In this document: positions 1-60,255 of the stretch, in pieces | How positions within the stretch are numbered: the stretch's first letter is position 1 | How the letters are laid out: each line of letters starts with the position of its first letter | From: Podarcis liolepis | Lineage: Eukaryota | Direction: 5' to 3' (one strand) | Length of the DNA stretch: 64,000 bases | Assembly: GCA_965112155.1 (NCBI GenBank) | Contig: OZ218103.1 | Position numbers and translations under genes: made by a program | Notes under the pieces: generated by a model | Database searches by the model: none | What the model was told of the DNA's origin: nothing | The model's input: only the letters and a program-made list of their open reading frames with translations

Positions 1-138
1 ACAAGCTAGTAATTTGTGTTCATGGACTTTAATGTACAAAATCTTGAGCCCTAGGCTCAAAGTCATCCTTCTCTGCCACAGTCAGTCACCCTCCTGCTAA
101 TACCAGTTCTGATCCCCATCCTTCCATCTCCAAGGACA

Positions 139-211
139 TGCTTTTATGTACGGTGTCAGCATGTGGTGACAGAAAGTTTACATCACATGCTTCATTGAGT
201 GCAGAAAAGCA
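139..211 (-). promoter_or_regulatory. SECIS element in the 3'UTR of the selenoprotein P paralogue
   Basis: Minus strand reads TGCTTTTCTGCAC TCA ATGA-A GCATGTGATGT AAA CTTTCTGT CACCACATGC T-GA-C ACC GTACATAAAAGCA. This gives an AUGA/GA core (195-192, 157-156), helix II with GCATGTG/CACATGC, apical AAA (179-177) 11 nt above the core, and a lower helix I. Confidence 0.9.
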
Positions 212-701
212 GGAAATGCAAAAATGGGGTCAAAATTGGCTTCTCAAGAAGCTGATTACTATAGCAGCTCTGTGTTCCTGAGGAAAACAATATGGCTTCC
301 TTAGGCAGTCCTCACCACAGAAATGGGGTGTATCTAAAAATCCATCTGAGCCCAAGAGGAACACCACCTTAAGGCTTGGTGGAACAAAACTGGTGGATAT
401 GAGGTTAACTGGGAGATTCAAAATGAGGATAGAAGTCTCATTGTGGACAAGCAGTTAAACTTTCCAATCACATATATGACACAACAAAAGTTTTTGTTGT
501 GTCCTCTGCTATCTGTTGAGAGACCTTGAATGATTAGGGAGTGGAACATTCACTTCCCTTCCCCTGCTGAAAACTGAGCCATCATATTTCTTCCTTCTGA
601 TGCATGTAAGTTTGCCCCCTGGCTCTTCTTAAAAGCTTGCTTAGTGCTAAGTATGCTTATGGCTAACAGTTGGGTGTTGCATACATTGAAGTTTAAATGC
701 T

Positions 702-3700
702 TTATGGGGATTCCCTTGTTTGATGCTTCTGTGAGCGATTCTGAGAGTGGAGAACTGGCTGGTGTGTACTGCTCAAACCCAAGGCTTTATGGTTGCCGAC
801 TCCTCCATGATGTGAATAGTGATGGGCTATGTGCTTGGTGTTAGGTGCTTCTTGGCTTGGCTCATCGTGATGGTACCTGGGTTCTTCCAGGTGCTTCTCT
901 TTGTGTCCAGATGCCTCAGTTGTCGTCACGTTAGTACTTGCTGTCTTATTCACCTGTGAAGGTAATGAAAGATTCTAGTATACAGTGGTACCTCACAAGA
1001 CGAATGCCTCGGAAGATGAAAAACGCGCAAGACGAAAGAGTTTTTCATTTTTTGAGTTGCTTCGCAAGACGAATTTCCCTATGGGCTTGCTTCGCAAGAC
1101 AAAAACGTCTTGCAAGTTTGTTTCCTTTTTCTTAAAACCGCTTGAAGAGGTGCAGTTGCAACTTGACCGTGCTTCGCAAGACGAAAAATCCGCAAGATGA
1201 AAAAACTCGCAGAACAAATTAATTTCGTCTTGCGAGGCACCACTGTACAGATGGGCTTAGGGTGAAGACAGAAACACATTTTTAAAAGTGAAGATGGATG
1301 TATATATCTGAAGTGATCTGCATTCAGCCCTTTTTGACAAAATATGTAAACTTCCAAAATCAACTGAGCTCAGAACAACTGCTACTTTCTGTTTTCAGGA
1401 GAAATTGGCTGTGAAGAATAGTGATTGCCTGGCAGTCACTTAAAAAGTGGTTTTAAAGAATGTGTAAAATAGAAGTTTAAATGAGTAGCCGTGCTGGATG
1501 TTTAGGCATAGAAATGGTTTTTAAAAGCTCAAAGTTTGAGAGGCAAAAAGCTGCACAGGAGTTTAAGCCAAGTATATATCTCTCTCAAAAGACCAGGGAG
1601 GGAAGAAGGTTTGATTTCTCCAGATCAGAAAAACCTGCACCGACTCCTGGAAGGAGATCTGTTTGACTTCACTCTCGGTATGGTCGAAATGGCTTAAAAG
1701 GTATTTATAATATTTTGCTGCATTGGCTATCGGGGCAGCAAAAAACTAAAATAGGTAATACATCAGGGCCCTCCCGCAATCCCACCTTGAGGAATGAACT
1801 TTCAGATCACTGATGGGGCAGGAAGTGACACCACAGGACAAGACAGCAGTTATTATTTCTTCTGTCCAAGGACCAATATGCTCCCATTCATTGGGAACAG
1901 GAAGCACTTCAACCTGACAAATTAAGGGTGTTAATTTATTTTTTTCAATAACTGAGGGCAGACAATGGCTACTGGGTGAGGCTCAAGCAGTACATGATAG
2001 CAGCAGATCCAGGTCTTGCCCCACCATGTGCAAAACAGGAAGGTGGGGTTGACTTTAGAGAAAAGGGGTGCCTGGGTGAGGGGAACCAAACTTTTCCTGC
2101 ACTTGATGCCACACAGCTTCTGTTCCAAAGTGTCTTTCTCCAAGTCAATCTCACTTTTAGTATCTGGACTCAACTGGGGAGAAAAGCACTTGGGGGAGGG
2201 CAGTGTGAGAAGCTGAAAGTGGGGGGGGGGCTTAGCATGTCCTCCCACCTGGGTTCTCCTGGACCCCTCCACGCAACACTATCTGTAACTGCGGCAGACC
2301 TGGTGTCTCCATCTGCAATTTGCTTCTGAGATTTTTATTTCAAGATGGTTTACTTCCTGCTTTGTGGTATCTCAACATCCTTTCTCCTTGCTTGGCTGTA
2401 GTGGCCCAATATAATAAAACCCTCCCTTCCACCTTCTCCTCCCACATCCCTGCTGTAAGACCGATTTGATCAGAAACCTAGAATTCCCAGGCAGAAGTTC
2501 AGGATGGGCAAATGAGGAAATGTCTGGCTTAAATAAAATAGTTGAAAAGGAAGTTGATGAGGGGATTCAAGTCCCTACCTCCTGGCTGCTGTTAGAGGGG
2601 TACCAGGAACAATTGCCACAGTAGTCTTTGCTGTGTGTGTACCGCACGGCTGCTTCAACATAGGGCAAGTGCAGAAAACTGTATGGCAGCTGGATGTGGA
2701 AAGCCAGCCTGCTGCACCTGCAAAGCCCGAGAGCCATGAAACAGATGGACATAAAGTTAGTGTCAGGAGAGTCTGTAATCCACTAATTTACACTGGAAAT
2801 GAATCTACCCTGGCCTGAAGAATCTGGTTTTCCTCACCAACAGTTGTGAGACATGATGGTAAAGAGAAACACTTACATCATGGTATGTCCTTTCTTTCCA
2901 GATGTGTCCTCAAACAGACTTTTTGATAATGTATTCAAGAATCCTGAATTCCATATATCTTACTTTCCTTCCTTCTGCCCAGGCCTGCAGACCCCCATTG
3001 GCCTCCCATCAGCAGCTGCCTACGGAGCACCCTCTTCTGCCCCCGCTAGTGCTGCTGATGGGATCCCTGCTGGTGGCAGCAGGGACTTTCGGCAGCCAAG
3101 GAAGGAGCTGGACTGAGCCGCCCTGCAGTTCACTGGATCCTGTGATGGTCCCACTGCCAGAACTGGGCTTCTTCCAGGCTCAATTGCTGCACCAGCTCCA
3201 AGCTGGCTCAGTGATCTGCCTTCCCTCCCTTCTGCCCCGGCTGCTATGCACAGCAGTGGCCCTGACTCTCCAAAACCCTATCAGTCTGGGTGGGGAGTTA
3301 GAATTGCTCCCTTAAGCACTGACCTGTCATAGATCAGGAAGTCATCCTTGTCCCCATCTAGAATTTGCCAGACGTCAGGCTCCAGAATCTGCTGCTGGTA
3401 AACAGGGACTCCCTCTGGGGCATGCCGTTTGAGCTCCCAGTACATGGCCCTGGAGAAAGGAGTCTTCTCATTCACAATCATGAAGCTGACATTGGTCACT
3501 CCTTCAAGTGACAGCTTCCTCTGCAAGCTGCCAAGGCTGGTGGGTAGGAAGAACAAGCGACGTTTAGGAAATGAGGTGCACAGATATAGGTTCCAGCCCT
3601 TGCCCTCTGCACATACCATGTGGGATATGAGCCTGCACTGCTGGACGGAGGCCCCTTCATTTATCAGTTCACTGGACTTGCCATTACAGCAGTTCCTGCT

Positions 3701-4392
3701 ACATAGATCCGGCAATAAGTTACATGATACATATTATACTTGAGCTGTAATTCACCAGGAAAATTGCATCCACCATCTATATGCGTGTTATATCTGGCCT
3801 GCTGTACCCCAGGCCTCAATTTTTGATTGCTGAACTGGAGCTTATAAACAATCAGTTCAGTTCTGTGTTTCCTGGTAGAAAGCTTAGGGACAAAGATGTG
3901 ACCTTTGTCCCTAAGCTGTGATATTGCCACTGAACACCAGATACAGGGTTCCAACACATATCTGACTTTCTAGTCACATCCAGACCATCTTTTTAAAGCA
4001 TGTGACTTTCCCCAAAGCATTATGGGAACTGTGATTTACCCCCTCAGAGAGCTATAGTTCCCAGCACTCTTAAACTGCGGTTCCCATGACTCTTTGGGGA
4101 AAGCCATGTGCGTCAAATGTATGGTGTGGCTGCGACCTAACAGCCCCTGACTCAGGCAACCTTCTCTATGAACTCACCTGGCGGCCTGCTTGAGACAGAA
4201 CTGTCAGCTGGCTTTCAACAGTGCCACCACTGTCACTTGGCCCTCCATCCCAGCCATGGGGGCCACCCCATTGATCTTCCAGAGTGGTGCAGGCTGGCAT
4301 ATTCGGGTCCTGTTCTCAGCCACGTCTGCCAGCGTAGCAGCAATTGCCAGGAGCAGCAGCAAGGTTGTTGTGGCTAGGGCTGAATAGCCCAT
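702..4392 (-). CDS. SELENOP2: Selenoprotein P paralogue (SELENOP2 / SelPb type), 272 aa, one selenocysteine; 4 coding exons: 4178-4392, 3324-3536, 2579-2717, 702-953
   Basis: Spliced translation: signal peptide MGYSALATTTLLLLLAIAATLA, then ...GQVTVVALLKAS-U-QFCLKQAAS|LGSLQRKL...DVWQILDGDKDDFLIYDR|CSRLAFHIQLPYSFLHLPYVEAAV...CGNC...|His-rich tail, TAA at 702-704. This matches the selenoprotein P N-terminal domain (UxxC, DDFLIYDRC, CGNC). All junctions are GT-AG, phases 2/2/0, total 819 nt. An acceptor at 4413-4414 implies an unlocated 5' non-coding exon. Confidence 0.93.
983..1245. mobile_element. Non-autonomous Tc1/mariner (Tigger/pogo-like) MITE
   Basis: TIRs cagtggtacctc...gaggcaccactg flanked by TA on both sides; internal repeats of gcaagacgaa; near-identical family member in opposite orientation at 36068-36363. 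Confidence 0.85.
3975..4135. mobile_element. Palindromic MITE-like element in a SELENOP2 intron
   Basis: Imperfect inverted arms (cacatccagaccat...ctttccccaaag...gggaact / gttccc...ctttgggggaaag...atggtgtggctgcg); boundaries approximate. Confidence 0.5.
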
Positions 4393-5539
4393 CCTGGCCA
4401 CCTCCCTTCAGCCTAAAGTAGAAGAGAGAAGCTTAAGACCATAAGATCTTCCCTCAGCAGGGAAGGGGGGAAAATAATGAATATGATATGTTTTGATAAT
4501 TTGTTATGTTGAAATTGTTAATAAAAAAACTTCCCTCAACAGGCCAGATGCAGCCTTTAAGTCTCAGAAGACTTTTTTTCCTTAGTAAACATAGATAAGA
4601 TTGTCCTACATGGATGCCCTAGTGCCCTGTATTTGAAAGTGACAGTAATGGATGCTTAAAGACACACTCACATATCAGCTGCCCAGAATTTCAGCTACAG
4701 CAAGGGTTGTTGCTATCCTGTGGCCCTCTGGATATTGTTGCAGTACAACTCCCAGCATGGTCATTAAGAACATATGAAGAGACCTGCTGGATCAGACCAA
4801 AGGCTCATCTAGTCCAGCATCCTGTTCTCACAGTGGCCATCCAGATGCCTAGTGCCACAGCACTCCCTCTATTTGTGGTTCCCATTGACTGGTATGCAGA
4901 GGTGTCTCGGACACTGGAGGTATCTATCATATCTAGTGGTTATGAATAGCCCTGCCCTCCATGAATTTGTCTAATCCTCCTGTCTTGCCAAAGGCAAGGT
5001 GGTTCTTTTAAAATCAGATTCAGAAGCAATACAAAATACACAGGTGAGCGAGAAGTTTAAAGATTTTATTCTAAAACAGCAAGAAGGGATACATATACCA
5101 AGCAAGCACTTCAATCTGCCACTTGGAAGCCCCCAAGAAGTGGCGAAGCGACTCCCCCAGGTACCCTCAGTTTGCATGACCCTGTGGCCAATCAGTCCGT
5201 GCATGAGCTTCAAACAAACTCTGCCCAAACTGTCCGATATTATAGACAACCTGTGTGGCTTCCAAGACTGGCTATGTGCAGCATCCATTAACCACCCCAC
5301 CTTCCCATTAACCACCTTCCCAAGGCCTCACTTTCTCAAAACAATGTCTGGACCATCAAAGAAGGTACCCAGAATTATCCTCCACAACTGATGAAGGCAG
5401 CTGTGTGTGGGGCTTCACCTCCTCTCAAAGTTCTCAGGACATTAAAGACTGTTCTCACAGCATCAAAACAATTAACAAGAGCAAGGGAGGGGGAAGGAAC
5501 AGAGGCAGGAAGGGTAACCGTGTCAGATCACTAACTCCT

Positions 5540-5918
5540 CAATACATTTTGTTTTCCAGATGCACCTCCAAAATAGTGGCTATCTCCACATCCTGTGAGA
5601 GCAAGTACTTATATAGTACTTCTTTTTGTCCGCCCTGAATTTTCCAATATTCAGCTTCATTGGAAGGCCTAATATTCTGGAAGACAGAGAACAGCTTCTC
5701 TCCACCCACGTTCTCCATGCCATGCATAATTGTAGACATCACTATCATGTCCCTACCTTATACACCTTTTTTCTAATCTGGAAATCCCTAAATGTTGTAA
5801 CCTTTCCTCATAAGACGGTTGTACCAGCCCTTTGATCATTTTAGTTACCCTTGCCTTTTCTGAAAGTTTTCCAACTCTACAGAATATATTTTTAGGGGAG
5901 GTGACCTGAATGGTACAC
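5540..5918 (-). mobile_element. Degenerate CR1-like LINE fragment
   Basis: Minus-strand ORF remnants with CR1 ORF2 C-terminal-like words (KMIKGLVQPSYEERLQHLGISRLEKR; IMHGMENVGGEKLF); boundaries approximate. Confidence 0.65.
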
Positions 5919-5926
5919 AGTATGCC

Positions 5927-6060
5927 CAGTGCTTTTTTTTCTAGAAACCTAGGTGCTGGTACCATGAAGTTGTTACAGTAAGTGCCACACTTTTTAACAA
6001 CAACAAAAGGAGGTGCTGGTACTGCGTACCCTTGAGTATCCCCTGGGGAAAAAAGCAACG
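5927..6060. mobile_element. hAT-type MITE with 8-bp TSD
   Basis: Starts cagtgctttttttt, ends aaaaaagcaacg; exact duplication agtatgcc at 5919-5926 and 6061-6068. Confidence 0.75.
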
Positions 6061-11743: not shown

Positions 11744-11841
11744 TTCCCCACCCCACAACAACTGAGCTGGCTTTCTTTTCTGTTTCTGTAGGTCTAGCAC
11801 CAAAGGTTGTGTTACCATTGACCACCCTTTCAAACTGCAGA

Positions 11842-13044
11842 ATGCCTGGTCTTCTGAACCGGATGTGCCACATTGGGTTCCACGTCCCTGAGGGGCAACA
11901 GCTGGCCAGCAACTTGGTGCGCCAGTTTGGATTCGAGCTGTTTGCTGCACGGGTGGCAGAATGGAGCAGGCAGCTGGCCTTCCGGAGAGGGGATGCCGTT
12001 TTTCTCGTCAATGAAAGGCTGAAGCCTGCCAAGAGAGACGCTCCACCTGTGCCATCTTCAGGCTGCCGCAAGGATAAAGGAATTCTGTACGACGTGGACC
12101 TAGAATATGCCGTCAGTACAGCCTCCAACATTTGCTTTGAGGCAGAAGATGTACCTGGCATCTCCCAAAGCCTACAGGAACGAGGATGCCAGATCCTCAT
12201 CCCTCCCACAGCTGTGGAAGATGAAAATGGCCACGTCACTTATTCAGTAGTGGGATCCATCATAGGCAACGTCAGCCACACACTACTTGACAGATCTCGG
12301 TACAGCGGACCGTTCCTACCTGGTTTCCACATGGTGGAGGGTGCTCCCAAGGTCCAGGTGGGTGGCCAGGTGACACATTTTGATCATATCACCTATGCTT
12401 GCCCCCAAGGTAGCTCGCAAGCTGTGTTGGACTGGTACAAGAACTGTTTGGGATTCCAGCGTTTCCCCATCCACCAGCAAGACAATGGTACTGATGGCTA
12501 TACAATCCAGGGTGCTGGTATGGGTCTTCGTCTTACTGCCATGCAGTCCAATGGAAGCGATCCGACTCTGCTTTGCAATGACTGTAAAATTATTCTAGCT
12601 GAGTCTCTGTCAGATCAAAAGAAGAACCAGGTGGATACTTTCTTGGAGCAGCACGGTGGATCGGGCATCCAACACGTGGCACTCTACACCACAGGTATTA
12701 TAGGAGCCGCTGCGGCCATGGCCAGATCTGGCGCAAACTTTTTCAAGCCCCCCTTATCCTACTACAGTGAGAAAAGGAAGGTGGAGGAGATAAGGCAAGC
12801 TGGGCAAAATCTTCAGCTCCTGAAGGACCACGGCATCCTTCTGGACGCTGGTGTAGGAGGCAGCGGTAGCTCTGGAGGCCTTTGTGAGAAGCAATACCTC
12901 ATGCAGATCTTCACAAAGCCTCTCTTTACAGAGGATACTTTCTTCCTGGAGCTTATAGAGCGATGTGGGGCCACAGGTTTTGGTGAGGGAAACATTCGTG
13001 CTCTCTGGCAGTCTGTACAAAACTATATGGACCAGCAAGTTTGA
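11842..13044 (+). CDS. HPDL: 4-hydroxyphenylpyruvate dioxygenase-like protein, 400 aa, single coding exon
   Basis: ATG at 11842. MCHIGFHVPEGQQLASNLVRQFGF and GDAVFLVNE match the HPDL N-terminus. Iron ligands in FDHITY, IQHVAL, FLELIE; C-terminal GFGEGNIRALWQSV. Adjacent to MUTYH as in other vertebrates. Confidence 0.96.
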   Translation: MPGLLNRMCHIGFHVPEGQQLASNLVRQFGFELFAARVAEWSRQLAFRRGDAVFLVNERLKPAKRDAPPVPSSGCRKDKGILYDVDLEYAVSTASNICFEAEDVPGISQSLQERGCQILIPPTAVEDENGHVTYSVVGSIIGNVSHTLLDRSRYSGPFLPGFHMVEGAPKVQVGGQVTHFDHITYACPQGSSQAVLDWYKNCLGFQRFPIHQQDNGTDGYTIQGAGMGLRLTAMQSNGSDPTLLCNDCKIILAESLSDQKKNQVDTFLEQHGGSGIQHVALYTTGIIGAAAAMARSGANFFKPPLSYYSEKRKVEEIRQAGQNLQLLKDHGILLDAGVGGSGSSGGLCEKQYLMQIFTKPLFTEDTFFLELIERCGATGFGEGNIRALWQSVQNYMDQQV

Positions 13045-31600: not shown

Positions 31601-34345
31601 CCATTTGTCTCAGGTTGTTCTCTTGCTACAGCTTTCAGCAGAAATTCTTTATAAGTTTAAATTATTATTACTAAATTTGTATTCTGCCCTATACCTGTAG
31701 ATCTTAGAGTGGTTCACAACATAAAATTACAATATTAAAGACACAAAATACATGATAGAAATATGAACAAAAACAAACCAATAATTGCCCCTTCCACAAC
31801 CCATTTTAAAGGGCATCGGGTGTCATTCGGCCAAAGGCCTGGTTGAAGAGAAAAGTTTTCAACTGGTGCCTAAAGATGTATAATGAAAATGAGTTGCATT
31901 TCTTTGTACAGCTTAGGAGACTGAAATCTCCTATTTGATACTAGAGCCTGGATTCTGAGTAAAGTATTTTACTTAATTCCAGTCCACAAAATTTTGACTG
32001 GCCTTGGCAGTTAGCCATAATTTATGGTCTCCACAAACTCTACTCCTTTGGCACATGCAGAGGACCCAAGAGATGAAGGGTCAGTCGCATTCCATGCTGT
32101 GCCTTTAAAACACTAAAATACAGCAAGAAGGATTCTCACTCAGTTTTCAGTATCTTCAAAATGTGGCACGAAGCAAAAGTTCTTTGAAAAAGAGACTGCA
32201 ACAGTCTCGTCTGCCTAATGCAGTAGAAGATGGCTCCTGTCTTAAGTTCTCTGTGGCAGCAGAATGAAGGGGTAGGGTTTTTCATGTTGTCCTTGGCTAC
32301 TAGCAGAAGAAACGTAGAAATGTGTGGAACTGACTAAACAACTCCTCAGGTTTTCTCTTCCCTTTTCTCCATTTCTCCACTCCCTGATTCTAATAATCAA
32401 ATGAGATGTTTGCCTTCTGCTTAGAGAAAAGTACTAGTTTGGGAAGATGCTCATACCCTGTTAGGGTGTTCCAGGTATGTGGCAGTCAGGGGAACAAGCA
32501 GCTGTGCTGATAGCATTTTCATGTGTCTGTGCTTCTCTTCTATGTATCTTTTATATTCTTATTTCTGCTTTAGCTCATTTTTCTACATGCAGGGGGCTTT
32601 CCTGTGAGTACATAGAGGAGCCTGTGCTGAAGGGCAGTTGATCTCCTTGCTCTGACACAGCCTCTGTTCCAGGTTCTAATGCTATTCTTGCCTTCCAGCA
32701 AGCGAGAAAACTACAGGTTGAAGAATTCAGAAAAGCAGCACCTCAGCATAGAGTTCTGCAACTATCCAGACAGCATAGCTTCCTACATCGATTATCGCTT
32801 CTGTTCCCTATCAGATGCCAGCCAGTCTGGGCTTGACCCTGCAAACAAAGTCACCATCTGTCAGACGTTTTCTGTAAGTATTACGTCTCTCTACCTTCTA
32901 TCTTGAAAGTTTGTCAAATAGTAAATTGTAACTGGTTCATTCAGTGTGGTGGATATTCTCAGATAGGGACTATGAGGGCAAGCTGTCTAGGATGAGAGAC
33001 AGGCTCTTGGGCTGGATGTGTGTGTGGCAGTGGGAGGCAAATGCTTATGCTGTTATTATGGTCAATTTTAAAGCATGGTACCTCTTTCTGCAGCTTTCTG
33101 ATAAAAATGGAGAGGTGCTAACTTTTAATAATGAGGGTATCTGGGAGCTTACTAGGGAACACAAGAGACCTGCTGGGTCAGGCTAAAGGTCCATTTAGTC
33201 CAGTATATTTTCCCAACAGTGGCTCAGCCCAGAAGCCTGCAAGTAATACATGAGGTTTGGATGATCCAGAATAGTCTTTTAATATTGCTATTTTCCGGTT
33301 AATCAGCATGGCACAATCTCACAAATGTGATAAATATCCAGAAGTGAATGTTGAAAGTTGCTCTAGGGCAGCGTTTCTCAAATTTGGGTCCCCAGCTGTT
33401 GGACTACAACTCCCATCATCCCTGACCACTGGTTGTGCTAGCTAGGGATGATGGGAGCTGTAGTCCAACAACAGCTGGCGACCCAAGTTTGAGAATCACT
33501 GCTGTAGGGTATCTAAGATCCAATGATATTTTCTCAAGTGTGCTAATGATTCTCACTCTCCCCTGCAGGCCTATGGCTGGTGCCCAGATGGATTGAAGTG
33601 TTCACAGTCTCACAACATTGACCTAATAATTAATGAAGATGAGAACCACAAAGAGGACAAGCGGAAGAAAAGGAAGCAGAAGTGGAAGCACCGGAAGAAT
33701 TTTGTAGAGCCCTCAAAGGAACCTGTGTTGAGAAGCCCTGAGAAGGAAGGAGAGGCGGCTTGCAATATGGAAGACGGTCCCCCATCCAAGCAGTCCTGTT
33801 TAAGCAACATGGTTGCTCCTACTGTAGATTCTGCAGGCACAGAAACTGTATCCAGTAATGAGGAGAGTTCTATGGATGTAGAACGAGAACTAGGCTCTGA
33901 CACGGCAACTGATACCAAGATGGATGAGGAACAAGCCAGTGCCACAGACAATGAGGGCATCACTTTATCACCATCCAAAGATGGGCCACAACAAAGGGCA
34001 GCAGGGACTGAAGGATCAGGACCAGAAGTCCAGATAGAGTGTGCTTCTGTAGTGACGGCTTTGTCTGGCACCCAGAACCCAGTGGCACCAGTGCCTGGCT
34101 GTTCAGAGGGTGGTATTCACCGGGCTGGCTTTGATGCCTTCATGACAGGTTACATTATTGCCTACGTCCATATGCTCAAAAACGATGAACACAAAGACTC
34201 AAGGGAAGGGCCTTGGTTGCCGGACTGCCATAACAAAGTGTACCTCAGTGGGAAGTCTGTCCCCCTTCAGATAGTGAAAAGTTTGTTTTCTAAATCCTCC
34301 AAAGCTCACAGCCAGAAGATGAAATTGGCTTGGGCTAGTAAGTAG
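28605..34345 (+). CDS. TOE1: Target of EGR1 protein 1 (DEDD deadenylase, Caf1z), 539 aa; coding exons 28605-28715, 29036-29076, 29488-29584, 29816-29974, 30787-31046, 32699-32873, 33569-34345
   Basis: [17 protein letters not shown], catalytic AIDT|[31 protein letters not shown]3H finger CQTFS|[15 protein letters not shown], basic [27 protein letters not shown] junctions in phase (1620 nt). Confidence 0.96.
33369..33501. mobile_element. Palindromic hAT-type MITE in the last TOE1 intron
   Basis: Almost fully self-complementary (cagcgtttctcaaa...ggactacaactcccatcatccct / agggatgatgggagctgtagtcc...tttgagaatcactg); flanks ctctaggg / ctgtaggg (7 of 8 match, TSD). Confidence 0.8.
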
Positions 34346-41117: not shown

Positions 41118-44100
41118 TTAAATGTCACATTTTGATTGCTCGCATACTGATGCTGGTGCATCTGAAGATGGCAGAGAAACAAGATTTGAGATGTCACTAT
41201 CCACTGCCTCAAAAAGAGAGGCTTCTCTGCCAGACTGTGGGGGAGGGTTAACACTGAACAATAGTTTGGAAGACTCCGACCTAGTGGAAGGCATGTTCCT
41301 TTGAGTTTCATCTTCAACTTCCATATCTTCAGAGGAGATGCAGCTCATAAACATCTCTGAGGATCTACTATCTGAATGGTCTAAATTATGTGCCAGGATA
41401 CCATCTACATTCTGGGCAACTTGCCCCCTGGGCTTTCCGAGTTCTACTTCCTTAGCAAAATTTACAGGGCAGTACCCATTTTCATCTTGGGGCTCCAGTC
41501 CATCAGAATAGTCCATTTCTTCCTCCTGCAGAAGAGGAGAAGGTGAGTCCTGCCTATGATGTTTGGCCTGAAAAGGAGGAATCTCAGACACTCCATATTG
41601 ACTGCTGCTCAGTAGCTTCTGCCGCACTTCAGCCCCCAGCTGGCTGGGATCACATCTACTAATGGTTGAAGAGAGATCCCCAAATCTATTATCTTTATGC
41701 ACAAATTCAAGAGATCCTGGAAGTGATCTGCTCCGTCTTACAGGAAGGAAAGAGGAGTCCAGCCAGTCAGTGTTAGAAGTCTGCCGGAATGGGGTCTGGT
41801 TCATCTTTAGACATCCTTCTGCCTCCGGGGAGTGCAAGTCAAATACAAGTGATATCACAGATTTGCTTGGCAAATCAAAAAATTTGACCTTTCCACCTTT
41901 CAAGTCTTCCCTAGAATTGAAAGGGTTGACTTTCCGGTTTGCCCCTTTGCTTGGTGTATAGTAGGGGTCCTGAACATTTATCTTGCGGCAAGGTTTGCGA
42001 GAGAATATGTCTGACTGACTGCGCGATAGCCAGATATTGCGCCGTGGACGGGGTGATTTAGGTGGAATCTTGTCATCCAGTGAACTTAGCCTTTTTACTC
42101 CTTGTCCCCTCTCCAGTAAACCTAGAATGGAGAGAAAAAGAAAATCAGACTTAAAGGATGTTGCTAGCGACAGGATTAGAATGATACAGAAAAAGATCAC
42201 CAGTGTACATATGACATTCTGTTCAGTCTTCCACAAAACCCCACACCTTGGAAATGTATGGACTCACATGGAATTCTGTATCAATTGAGATCCAAATAAT
42301 TTTTTATTCAGCTAAGTAGGAAGTAAAGGTCTAGTATAGAATATTAATACTAATAAATAGTGTTTAAAGTAAACTAAGGATTGATATGATCCCTAACTCC
42401 TCATGTTCATCCAAAATCTTTTCTCTAAGTCAACATTTTACTGCTTTGAGCTTCATTCTGCATAGACCATTAGAAGGGAATGAAGAACCAATTGTTAAAG
42501 ACTGAAGACAGAATAACAAGTCTTATCTCTATTACATGTGGGCAAGTATTTTCAAAGGCCAACCATAACAGGAGATATATCCTTCCCATTCTATTATTGT
42601 GCTCTGTGCACTAGCAGATTGTTCCCAAGAACAAGAGTTGAGGAGGACAGCCACCATTTCATGAGACTATAAGACAAATTCATGCTACTAAAGGCTGATG
42701 TTTTCAACGTGAGGTTTCCTTAGAGCAAAGACACCCCTGTGCTTTGAAAGGTGAAGGCAAACAATAATACCTCCCTCTGGAAGTGAAGAGGTTATATTCC
42801 ACATCAGCTTTGAAACAGCACATAGTCCAGTGCAGAAACTATGACACACAGCAGTTGGGCTTGGGGGTAAAATCTGTTAAATACATGTAAATAATGCATC
42901 ACTAAATAGAGCAACTGCAAATATTAAGGTCAAGTGGAAAGTGGCTGTCTCAGCCATGTAACAGCTTCCTCTCAAAACTGAGAACAGGTACCCAAATTTT
43001 GGCTGCAATTTCTCTAAGCACACCAGGGGGCAGTGTGATGCTTTACAAGAAGGTACAATCCAATCCTAACACCAACACTTCCTATGTTTTATTATGTTAA
43101 ACATACATATTTCTGGGTACATTAAAGGATTTGCAATTAACCAGCACTGATACAGAAACCTTTTGAACAAGTTTCAGGGTCCACATGTATCTCCCAGATA
43201 TGAAAGCGCTTCCTCATTTGCACAATGCCAAGTACAGCTCTCCTCACATGTCTCCAGTGCCCTTAATATTGCAAAGAATGAAGAACCCAGTGTACTCTGG
43301 ATCAAGCTGACAGCGGCTATCGCTGTTCAAATGAAGGCACTTTTCCATACAGTCCTCAATCCTTATTGTGTGGGGTAATGACACCTATGGCCCAAAACAA
43401 TGTATCCAGTCCCTAGATTCATTTCACTCGCAGTTTCCACAAACCAACTTGCAGCAGTAGTCTTCAAAGCTGCAAGAATTCAAACTGATCTGATATAGTC
43501 TCTAGGAAATACTTTGCAATAAGTCAGCCTCTGGTTAAAGGTCAGACATCCCAAGCCAACAAGGAAGAGCTTAATTTGGATGAAGTTCCTGGAATCTGTT
43601 TCACAAGGGCACAGCAGACACCAGGAGCCTTGTTTGCTTCTAAAATTAGATATTTAAACTCCAAAAGTGCAAGCTACAGAAAAAGCTACTAACAGCTAGT
43701 AGTTACTTATGTAACAGTTTCCTTTTGAGGTCTATATAGTTAGAATTTGGGTACCTACGGAGCAGGGCTTTCGAAAAAGTGGGAAATAAGAATTAAAAAG
43801 ATGAACGATAAAAGTTTACATCATATTCAAATAAAATGTTCCCTTTGAAAAATAAAATAAGAGGACTAATGTCAAGCAACAAAGCATTTGTGAGAACTGG
43901 TCTTCATCTGTCATAGCCTATGATGCATAAAAAATGGGTGTCTCAGAAATTATATTAGGGTATGGGGAAAAGTTTGTTCTCAAAGTGGCACCTCCTCTGA
44001 TCCTGCAAGGATTTCTTAAACCAAACAAAGGATTATTTTACTCCACTAGTCAAGTTGACCCTTAATGACATTTAAGCAGAGCAATTCTAATTCACATTTA

Positions 44101-53100: not shown

Positions 53101-56100
53101 GACCCGAATTAACACGGGCAATCTGCTAAATCAGATAACACTACAAGGACATCAGAAAATTATTCCAGAAAACCCACATCACTGATTAGCCAAGCTGTGC
53201 TCTACAAGGCAACTGTGGGTAATTCTTATAGATATGTCCCTGGATTGAGCTTCACAGAAGGTCTCTGGGAAACTTTTTAATGATATTTATTTTGATAAAG
53301 AGAACACAATCAGACTGGGAACCAATGGTGACATTCACTCAGAATACTCACTGTCAACTATAACATCCCTGAAAATAAGTATTTATAATGAATTTAATTC
53401 TTGGTTAGTAGTAAGGAGTGACAGTCTAGCAATAGGTTTTGGATGGAATTGTATTCCCCTTGAGGGGGAAAAAAATCAGGTTTGCTACCACACTGTTTTC
53501 AGGCAAAATTCAAAGTCATTGTCTTTAAAACCCTATATTTTTCAGTCCAGGATATTTAAAGGACTGCCACCTGCCCTACTTTAATCTTGCCTGTCCACTG
53601 AGGTCAATGAGAGAGGCGCTTTTTGTATGTCCAATCACCCATCACCATCTGAAACATGGTGGTTGGGACTAGCACTGCTCTATTTATCTAGCCCAGTACC
53701 CTCTACCCTGACTGGTCTTGCACAGAGGCTTTTCACAGGCTGGAGGTGCCAAGGATTGAACATGGAATATTCTGTATGCAAATATTGCACTCCACCACTG
53801 AGCTACGGCCCCTCGTTATGCAGATTCAAATTCTGTGGAATGTATTGCTACATTGCATGTATAAAAAAGTCAAATAATACATGATCAAATCTCTCTGTGG
53901 AGACTTCCCCAGAGATACAATTCTGGAAGTTTATACAACCTGAGTTATTCCTTAGGCTGAAATCTTCACTTAAAGAAGCTGAAACTGAGCTCCAAAGAGT
54001 TAACAAATGTTTATACATAAACAGATGTGAGTGAACATAAAGCTCCTTTTGTGTGTTGAGAGAGCTTAACATCTGCTTTGCACAGTGTAATCCTGCTAAG
54101 GAAGTTCAACATTTATTTTCTTCTCACATAAGAAAAGATATCCACTAGCAATAGCTTGTTCAGGCCCAATGCAGTTTCCATTAATTTTCTTTGTGCTGCT
54201 GAAAGCAAAGAAGGATTGCTTTATATTCAGGCATGTTACCACAGTTTCCTTCACATTAGCTAAAACAGCCAAATGGGACAATATGATCCTGCTACTGTCT
54301 TAATGGTTACATACAACTTTTACAGTATTGCTAAAGAAATCCATGTCTGCTAAATGAAGTCATTTAAGAGACTCAATTTATGCTGAAAAGTGTGATATAA
54401 ACACACACTCTCTCTCTCTATACATATATATATAAACAAGAGAGAGTTCAGACAATTTTGCACTGTAAAAGTTTGTCTCAGACAAACAGATTTATCTAAA
54501 AACATTAACAGGTAAGAAATGCATCCTCACAATAACTCATTGTCTCCTGCTTCTCATCCTTTTTCAATATTCCTTTCTGCCAACTTGAAGGTTTTACAAG
54601 CAAATTATCTAAATCCAAATATAAAGTTCACTAGCTTAAATAGCAATTCCATAAATCAAAGGAAGGTAGGAAAAAGGCTAGCATAAAAAAAATATGAGTA
54701 GAATTGTTACCATTTAAGTAACATTGGTATTTCTATTTTAGGATTTTTAATTTTAGGATTGTGGAGCTTTTGTACTACTCTGGCTTGTCAAACTTGAAAA
54801 TCTTGAAAACTTTTCAAGAAGCATAATGGCAACATGGAAATCTACTCCTCATTCTCCACAGTGTTCTCAGTATATTTTGCATTTAGACCAGGGTGCAGGG
54901 AAGAACCTTTGGTCGTTAGTCTGATAAGGATCCCAAAATGGTCCACAAGGATGTTTTCCTCAAAAAACCCTGAGCTGTCTGTCTCTCCTTGTAAGCTTCA
55001 TGCATGTGCCTCTGGCTGGAAAGCATACAAGCAAAAATGCTACTATTTTTCAAATGAGGAAAAGAACTGGACCCTCAGCCAGAGCTTCTGTGCTTCACAG
55101 AATGCCTCTCAGGCTGTGTTTAAAAGCAAAGAAGAAATGGTGAGAAATGCAAATATTTTAGCTGTTCAACACAAGTCCTTTGTGATACTGATAAAGATGT
55201 TCAACCATTAGGGGCTTTGCTGGGCTTAAATATAAAACCTCTTAGGATCCTACCTAGAAAACACGAACAAGTCAGATAAATACTGGCAAAGGAGGTTTGC
55301 AGTGCAATCCTAACCACGCCTACCCAGAAGAAAATCCTATTGAATTAAATGGGGCTTTCTGCCAGGAAATAGAACTGCTAGTACATTTGCAAAGCTAAGC
55401 AGGTCTGCTTTGGTTTCAAAGTGGATGGGGGATTGCAAGGTGAGATTCCTGCCTCTCAGAGGGTTGGAACAGATTGCCCGCGGGGTCCCTTCCAACTCTA
55501 CAATTCTATACCCCATACCTGTGATGTCAAGTATGCAGCAGGTAGACACACAGCAGCCAACAAATGATTTGGAGTGTGCTCCCAGTTGTTCCTTGGCAAG
55601 TGAGGATTGGTGCTGCTGAAAGAACCAATTACTTTGTATTCCCAGCTTGAATTCAAGCAGGTGATTCAAATGATTTTAATCTACTGGCATGGCTCAAGCC
55701 ATGGCGACAAAGGAAAATAATTACTCTGCATCATCTGTTGAAGTCAGGTAATTTGGTAATTTGAGTGGACAGCTCCACCCAGCTGTCAAATTGGTCTGCA
55801 GGGGATGGGGGAGCTGCCAAAATGGCCCACCAGCTGCTAAAGCTTCCCTGCCCCTGATTTAAAGGGTTCAAAAAGGTTGCACATATGAATACATTATAGT
55901 GTTGTAATTCTAACTATCTATAAAGGTAGATATCATCATAGTACAAATGGGGAGAGGGGTCAACATTGAGAAGATGTAGCTTTTTTAAGGCTACCTAGTG
56001 AGTTCAGGGCTGATTCAAATGGGAGAATTCATCGTTTGTATCTCAATCACTTAAATAGTAAGATAAGAGTGAAACCACAGGCAACACTAACAGGAATTAT

Positions 56101-60127: not shown

Positions 60128-60255
60128 TCTACACTGACTGGCAGTAGCACTCTAGGATTTCAGACAGGGGCATTCCCAGTCCTACCCGGAAATGCCAGGG
60201 ATTGAACTTGGGACCTTCTGCATGCAAAGCAGATGCTCTGTCACTGAGCTATGGC
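60128..60255 (-). mobile_element. tRNA-derived SINE head (also at about 58595-58675 and 53700-53810)
   Basis: Minus strand CCATAGCTCAGTGACAGAGCATCTGCTTTGCATGCAGAAGGTCCCAAGTTCAATCCCTGGCAT with A/B boxes; continues into non-tRNA body. Confidence 0.65.

Follow-up and report, generated by a model that had tools for sequence, protein, structure and literature searches.

A Selenoprotein P Paralogue in Podarcis liolepis

A SELENOP2 (SelPb) gene, the short single-selenocysteine (Sec) paralogue of selenoprotein P, is encoded on the minus strand of a 64,000-nucleotide stretch of the wall lizard Podarcis liolepis genome (contig OZ218103.1, assembly GCA_965112155.1). This whole stretch is referred to as the window, and it is free of N. 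The reading frame of the gene is interrupted by a single in-frame TGA at codon 63. It is very likely that this UGA is recoded as Sec through a SECIS element in the 3'UTR, and that translation ends at a TAA far downstream. The Sec insertion is judged from the conserved reading frame, the orthologous residues, the transcripts and a candidate SECIS structure. The features are listed in Table 1.

Table 1. Features of the SELENOP2 gene in the window.
Feature	Positions	Strand	Extent and evidence
Exon with the start codon, a signal-peptide-like N-terminus and the UxxC motif	4178..4412	-	Coding part 4392-4178, 215 nt; contigs cover 4178-4414
In-frame TGA, codon 63, putatively read as Sec of the U-Q-F-C motif	4204..4206	-	Column alignment, ORF ends, contig letters
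Coding exon 2	3324..3536	-	213 nt, 70 whole codons and split codons at both ends; SelP_N, contigs
Coding exon 3	2579..2717	-	139 nt; SelP_N, contigs
Last coding stretch	702..953	-	252 nt including TAA (704-702), 83-aa tail; junction, gecko SelPb alignment
3'UTR, part inside the window	1..701	-	Transcribed, depth equal to coding exons
Candidate type I SECIS	125..218	-	Fold, SECIS_1 alignment, rule-based scan

Gene Structure and Domain Composition

The four coding exons, each handled separately by script, comprise 819 nt, corresponding to 272 codons and the TAA stop, and the TGA is the sole internal stop. The start codon at 4392-4390 lies in the context aggATGg, and 62 sense codons, counted from the ATG, precede the TGA. 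All introns are of the GT..AG type with pyrimidine-rich acceptors, and the exon phases agree, with the split codons AG/C and AG/G. The sequence-only reading of this DNA had proposed that the frame continues beyond the TGA, is spliced in phase into three further selenoprotein P-like exons and encodes a protein of 272 aa. This gene structure was borne out. The minus strand reads CAG TTC TGT CTC AAG CAG GCC GCC AG after the TGA, followed by the GT donor at 4177-4176; the phases fit, exons 2 and 3 are tied to the family by SelP_N matches, and all the exons are tied to each other by junctions in transcript contigs.

Homology searches were run exon by exon. Exon 1 (residues 28-62) matched the Pfam family SelP_N with the E-value 5.1e-9 at profile positions 2-36, exon 2 with 1.7e-24 at positions 47-116, and exon 3 with 1.3e-14 at positions 118-161. 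The three N-terminal pieces thus clear the SelP_N cut-off separately and are collinear along the profile. The gap of 10 profile positions between the matches of exons 1 and 2 is filled exactly by the Sec codon, QFCLKQAA and the Ser codon that the intron splits. No Pfam match, including none to SelP_C, was obtained with the last exon; its tail is His-rich, contains several N-x-S/T (N-glycosylation) sites and has no Sec-rich domain. A PDB sequence search with exon 2 found no solved relative.

Transcription, Splicing and Transcript Ends

Fourteen small runs contain about 0.3 of the words of positions 1-4600, an interval of which roughly one third is exonic. Contigs of three of these runs, from three studies (X1, X2 and X9), and reads of the raw RNA-seq run X23 were examined. 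X1, X2 and X9 are presumed to be RNA, for which their splicing and the contrast in depth between exons and introns speak. In X1, the depth is about 1,400-1,900 on exons and 0-10 on the non-repeat parts of introns.

The three junctions that had been predicted from the letters (4178/3536, 3324/2717 and 2579/953) are each present in contigs of all three studies, and the last is additionally found in 4 raw reads of X23. The junctions are clean skips that read CT..AC on the plus strand and hence GT..AG on the strand of the gene. The four coding exons follow one another in the expected order within a single X9 contig of 4,503 nt. The raw reads are stranded, and only pairs with the first mate on the plus strand cover the exons, which fits a minus-strand RNA. 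The gene structure is far more than chance would produce, since exon pieces pass SelP_N separately at consecutive profile positions and all junctions are seen in transcript contigs.

The exon bearing the ATG begins at 4412, immediately behind an AG acceptor (4414-4413). On its 5' side, the X9 contig continues for another 240 letters without a match anywhere in 4415-6000. The first coding exon is therefore not the first exon of the mRNA, and an upstream non-coding exon exists.

At the other end, contigs extend 98, 1,021 and 2,717 nt beyond window position 1, which points either to a 3'UTR that continues outside the window or to an overlapping transcript. An unusually long 3'UTR of the lizard SELENOP2, reaching 1.0-2.7 kb past the window, might contain some further regulatory element, such as a second SECIS. 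This is unlikely, and a second SECIS, if true, would be unexpected for a single-Sec mRNA; the extension could alternatively belong to an overlapping antisense transcript.

As a separate observation, an ATTAAA signal is located at about position 33.

The In-Frame TGA and Its Orthologous Position

Known Cys-containing orthologues can be aligned directly to the TGA. The window encodes ...VTVVALLKAS-TGA-QFCLKQAAR..., and the Xenopus laevis protein P0099, annotated as selenoprotein Pb-like, has ...VTVVALLQAS-C-GFCLIQAAR.... Cys is also found at this column in Rhinophrynus (...QAS-C-SFCLVQAAS...), Hymenochirus (...QAS-C-GFCLVQAAN...) and the SelPb of the chimaera Callorhinchus (...LLKAS-C-QFCLTQAAK...). 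The eight residues following the TGA agree with Xenopus at 6/7 positions. The placement of the TGA at the Sec position of the UxxC motif, part of the original proposal, is thereby corroborated by the Sec/Cys column in these four genera.

The pairing of Sec and Cys at one alignment column is a classic signature of selenoproteins, and for this reason the Cys orthologues support the Sec reading. The sequence-only reading had listed orthologues with Cys among the observations that would speak against Sec. Such orthologues do occur, but only in lineages with a documented Sec-to-Cys conversion of SELENOP2 (Anura; PMC13134290), and the objection fails; the frog proteins are the Cys homologues to be expected from this conversion.

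The position of the stop is also shared among sauropsids. The search with exon 1 recovered five short called ORFs, all ending in ...LLKAS. One of them is the window's own, and the other four come from other sauropsid assemblies: a gecko-like Logan contig, a snake-like Logan contig, an ENA contig and the turtle Platysternon. Judged from these ORF ends, which give the position and not the identity of the codon as TGA, the stop is conserved in position across squamates and a turtle. In the king cobra model, VTVVALLKAS-U-Q is skipped and FCLKQAAS is kept, indicating that coding goes on beyond the stop position. Taken at the level of sequence comparison, these data support the assignment of TGA 4204-4206 as a Sec codon.

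Two database proteins carry other residues at the Sec column: Arg in P0106 from Geotrypetes (KAS-R-HFCL) and Gly in P0130, a SelPa from Liparis (HAG-G-AFCL). These are probably annotation work-arounds for the TGA and not true substitutions.

A Candidate SECIS Element in the 3'UTR

A SECIS-like hairpin is located 507 nt beyond the TAA and 1,136 nt beyond the UGA in the mature mRNA. The stretch 225-125 of the minus strand folds at -25.3 kcal/mol, with a z-score of -2.8 against shuffled sequences. In helix I, 218-199 pairs with 151-125. The quartet AUGA at 195-192 faces GA at 157-156 in an internal loop, and helix II is formed by 191-181 and 168-158 (8+2 bp). The apical loop of 12 nt (180-169) opens with UAAAC and contains AAA at 179-177. 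All features of the SECIS consensus (AUGA / AA / GA kink-turn) are thus found within the hairpin, inside the transcribed UTR. The pair next to the tandem G·A in the quartet is U·C, not the common U·U.

Rfam SECIS_1 was aligned to this hairpin over its full length (1-64 of 64) at 145-205, its AUGA, AAA loop and UGA all coinciding with those of the hairpin, at 16.4 bits versus a gathering threshold of 35; the alignment was reported only when the interval 110-240 was searched. No SECIS was found by Rfam in the whole window at the gathering threshold, where the sole match was tRNA-like (60195-60251), nor in positions 1-1000 in E-value mode.

A rule-based scan of both strands of the 64-kb window (128 kb) yielded a single match, the hairpin itself, against a null of 0.07 per simulated window, a value that is indicative only because the rules were written after the candidate hairpin had been seen. 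The rules required ATGA, a helix II of at least 9 pairs with at most 1 mismatch, an apical loop opening with AA, GA on the opposite side and a helix I of at least 5 bp. The bare pattern ATGA..AA..GA is uninformative, with 194 matches versus about 266 expected. The hairpin is a type-I SECIS-like structure and is regarded as a candidate SECIS.

The structure bears on the possibility that the TGA is a true stop, leaving only a 62-residue peptide or a transcribed pseudogene with a relic downstream frame. The standard code does end the ORF at 4204, and no SECIS exceeds the Rfam threshold. Such a stop is nevertheless hard to reconcile with the 209 further codons that stay open over three correctly phased GT..AG introns, with a SECIS-like hairpin in the UTR, or with two of the three downstream exons clearing the SelP_N cut-off alone and the last aligning to the C-terminus of gecko SelPb. 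The downstream part is conserved across squamates, turtles and the alligator (79-90% identity), and the stop falls at the same residue in at least four other sauropsid assemblies where frogs have Cys. An unrecoded stop upstream of exon junctions is expected to trigger nonsense-mediated decay, and yet the mRNA is abundant although the TGA precedes three junctions. A true stop is thus very improbable, and recoding of the UGA as Sec is the preferred reading.

Relationship to SELENOP1 and SELENOP2

The sequence-only reading assigned the gene to selenoprotein P. The family assignment holds, given the SelP_N matches; the gene is, however, SELENOP2/SelPb and not selenoprotein P proper, according to the tree and the sequence identities. 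The best match of exon 2 is the Podarcis muralis UniRef entry P0001, which is 100% identical, followed by P. lilfordi. Among 60 exon-2 matches, every name that specifies a paralogue is either "selenoprotein Pb" or "P2". The identity of exon 2 is 79-90% to the other reptile matches, and 64-69% to fish SelPb versus 35% to fish SelPa. In a maximum-likelihood tree of 24 rows, the three SelPa rows, the only ones included, were split from the 21 SelPb rows with the support of 100/100, and exon 2 from the window grouped with P. lilfordi within the squamate SelPb.

The 3' end leads to the same paralogue. The last exon is near-identical to the P. lilfordi model P0017. The C-terminal stretch shares 43% identity with that of gecko SelPb and terminates at the corresponding position, and the position of the TAA matches that of other squamate SelPb models. 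With a single TGA among the 272 codons and no second UGA, the multiple C-terminal UGAs of the SELENOP1 type are absent.

The lizard gene shows no difference of substance from the SELENOP2/SelPb of non-eutherian vertebrates and is a member of this group. It shares with them the single Sec in the N-terminal UxxC of a thioredoxin-like SelP_N domain, the His-rich tail, the lack of a Sec-rich C-terminal domain, and a SECIS, here a candidate, in the 3'UTR. SELENOP1 (SelPa), the plasma selenium-transport protein, has a homologous N-terminal domain with the UxxC at the same position, and conserved intron positions have been reported (PMC3316567). The lizard gene differs from SELENOP1 in having one UGA and a TAA after the His-rich tail, and in the low identity of exon 2 to fish SelPa given above. 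The Cys-SelPb proteins of Anura, such as P0099 of X. laevis, are orthologues of the same length class (262-283 aa) and share the context QAS-x-xFCLxQAA, but they have Cys in place of the UGA, need no recoding and are annotated at full length.

Two ORFs on the plus strand of the window are informative about the locus. The ORF at 11809-13044 is uninterrupted over 411 aa and matches TIGR01263 with the E-value 3.9e-62, which is below the equivalog cut-off, as well as Pfam Glyoxalase; it looks like a single-exon HPDL (4-hydroxyphenylpyruvate-dioxygenase-like) gene. The ORF at 33593-34345 (250 aa) shows a weak match (E-value 3e-4) to the CAF1 ribonuclease family, at the C-terminal end, and is probably the last exon of TOE1. 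MUTYH would be expected between the two. HPDL, TOE1 and TESK2 are neighbours at human 1p34. The SelPb locus is conserved, and its counterpart on human chromosome 1 is without the gene (PMC6301783). The flanking ORFs, as classified by these matches, fit the conserved SelPb locus and not the SELENOP1 locus.

It is conceivable in principle that the gene is SELENOP1 proper, with the Sec-rich C-terminal tail missed or lying elsewhere, as Pfam SelP_N does not separate the paralogues and the 3'UTR leaves the window with room for a second SECIS. This is highly improbable in view of the termination of the last coding exon by a TAA at the same place as in other squamate SelPb models, the lack of a SelP_C match, the fully supported separation from SelPa in the tree, the greater identity to fish SelPb than to SelPa, and flanking genes that fit the SelPb locus (PMC6301783). 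The gene is accordingly treated as SELENOP2.

Differences between the Reads and the Window

All four runs have a 4-nt insertion (AGAC) behind position 413 in the 3'UTR relative to the window, and substitutions common to the runs are found at 66, 260, 291, 700 and 2618. Either the sampled animals differ here from the reference individual, or the assembly is in error.

The SECIS hairpin and the TGA are untouched by the insertion and the shared substitutions. An X2 contig covering 4196-4413 has one difference only, at 4324, and hence contains the TGA, and among the differences listed for the four runs none falls at 4204-4206. It is therefore scarcely credible that an assembly error, a polymorphism or RNA editing makes the codon a Cys codon (UGY) in the mRNA of most animals, although SELENOP2 is known to have exchanged Sec for Cys in other lineages (PMC13134290); the ORF of the same protein from an independent assembly (P0131) also stops there, as do other sauropsid ORFs.

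Erroneous Gene Models in Public Databases

Automated annotation damages this gene, as had been anticipated from the letters alone. In the P. muralis UniRef entry P0001 (180 aa), ...VVALL is followed directly by GSLQRK..., and KAS-U-QFCLKQAARSL is skipped; the entry is further mis-spliced at exon 3 and ends inside intron 3 (...QEVGT), so that the last exon is lost. For P. lilfordi, the model P0017 takes an internal Met as its start. The Sec region is skipped or replaced in the models of Varanus, Salvator, Anolis, Alligator, Gopherus, Malurus, Monodelphis and Cyprinodon, and the models inspected include at least a dozen, from other reptiles and from birds, marsupials and fishes, in which the break falls at the Sec codon as well. 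The protein collection searched returned no U-containing entries, not even the chicken or zebrafish proteins, so the lack of a correct P. muralis model in it says nothing about RefSeq.

Mis-annotations of these kinds have been classified as "Skipped", "Downstream" and "Stop codon", and flawed selenoprotein annotations were reported to account for 88% in Ensembl, 95% in GenBank and 23% in RefSeq; the genome list of this survey includes PodMur_1.0 and GCF_004329235.1 (PMC12822975).

Other Features of the Window

Interspersed repeats are present at 1000-1400, in intron 3, and at 4800-5000, upstream of the gene. The summed depth of RNA contigs on them reaches about 33,000 (X2), on both strands and with many loose ends. 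The repeat at 1000-1400 contains repeated CGTCTTGCGAAG-like units, and TRF detected a period of 16 nt at 1174-1211. This repeat is probably of the SINE type, with transcripts arising from many copies in the genome.

The tRNA-like match at 60195-60251 on the minus strand reaches 38.4 bits with Rfam tRNA and covers model positions 8-63 only, which makes a tRNA-derived SINE fragment more likely than a tRNA gene. A 372-aa open frame at 41118-42236 on the minus strand gave no Pfam or NCBIfam match; it may derive from a repeat or represent a large exon. The ORF at 54834-55211 gave no Pfam match.

Proposed Translation and Function

The features described above can be combined into a model of the expression of the lizard gene. 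The mRNA, transcribed from the minus strand, consists of at least one upstream non-coding exon and the four coding exons. A SECIS is the binding site of SECISBP2, through which eEFSec and Sec-tRNA reach the UGA. In the lizard mRNA, the type-I SECIS-like hairpin 1.1 kb downstream would recruit this standard eukaryotic machinery, UGA-63 would be recoded as Sec by SECISBP2, eEFSec and Sec-tRNA[Ser]Sec, and translation would terminate at the true TAA. The predicted product of 272 residues would have a signal-peptide-like N-terminus, a thioredoxin-like SelP_N domain with U63-Q-F-C66, and a His-rich tail.

The hydrophobic N-terminus (MGYSALATTTLLLLLAIAATLA) is a putative signal peptide, and the product may thus be secreted, with which the N-x-S/T sites and the His-rich tail fit. 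The UxxC forms a redox centre of the thioredoxin-like SelP_N domain, and the U-Q-F-C of the lizard protein may have a thiol/selenol oxidoreductase role. UxxC has been described as a conserved thioredoxin-like motif (PMC12822975).

SELENOP2/SelPb belongs to the ancestral vertebrate selenoproteome (PMC3316567, PMC13134290). It is a single-Sec gene that is present outside Eutheria, including reptiles and birds, has been lost in Eutheria, and has Cys in Anura and sharks (PMC13134290, PMC3316567). The lizard gene is an ordinary member of this group, and both the presence of SELENOP2 in sauropsids and the type of Sec mis-annotation are already published. Descriptions of the vertebrate selenoproteome have included SELENOP2/SelPb since 2008-2012. 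That the recoding was spotted from the raw sequence validates the ability of the first, model-based reader. The practical value of the finding is in annotation hygiene: the public model of P. muralis is without the catalytic Sec and the last exon of SELENOP2.
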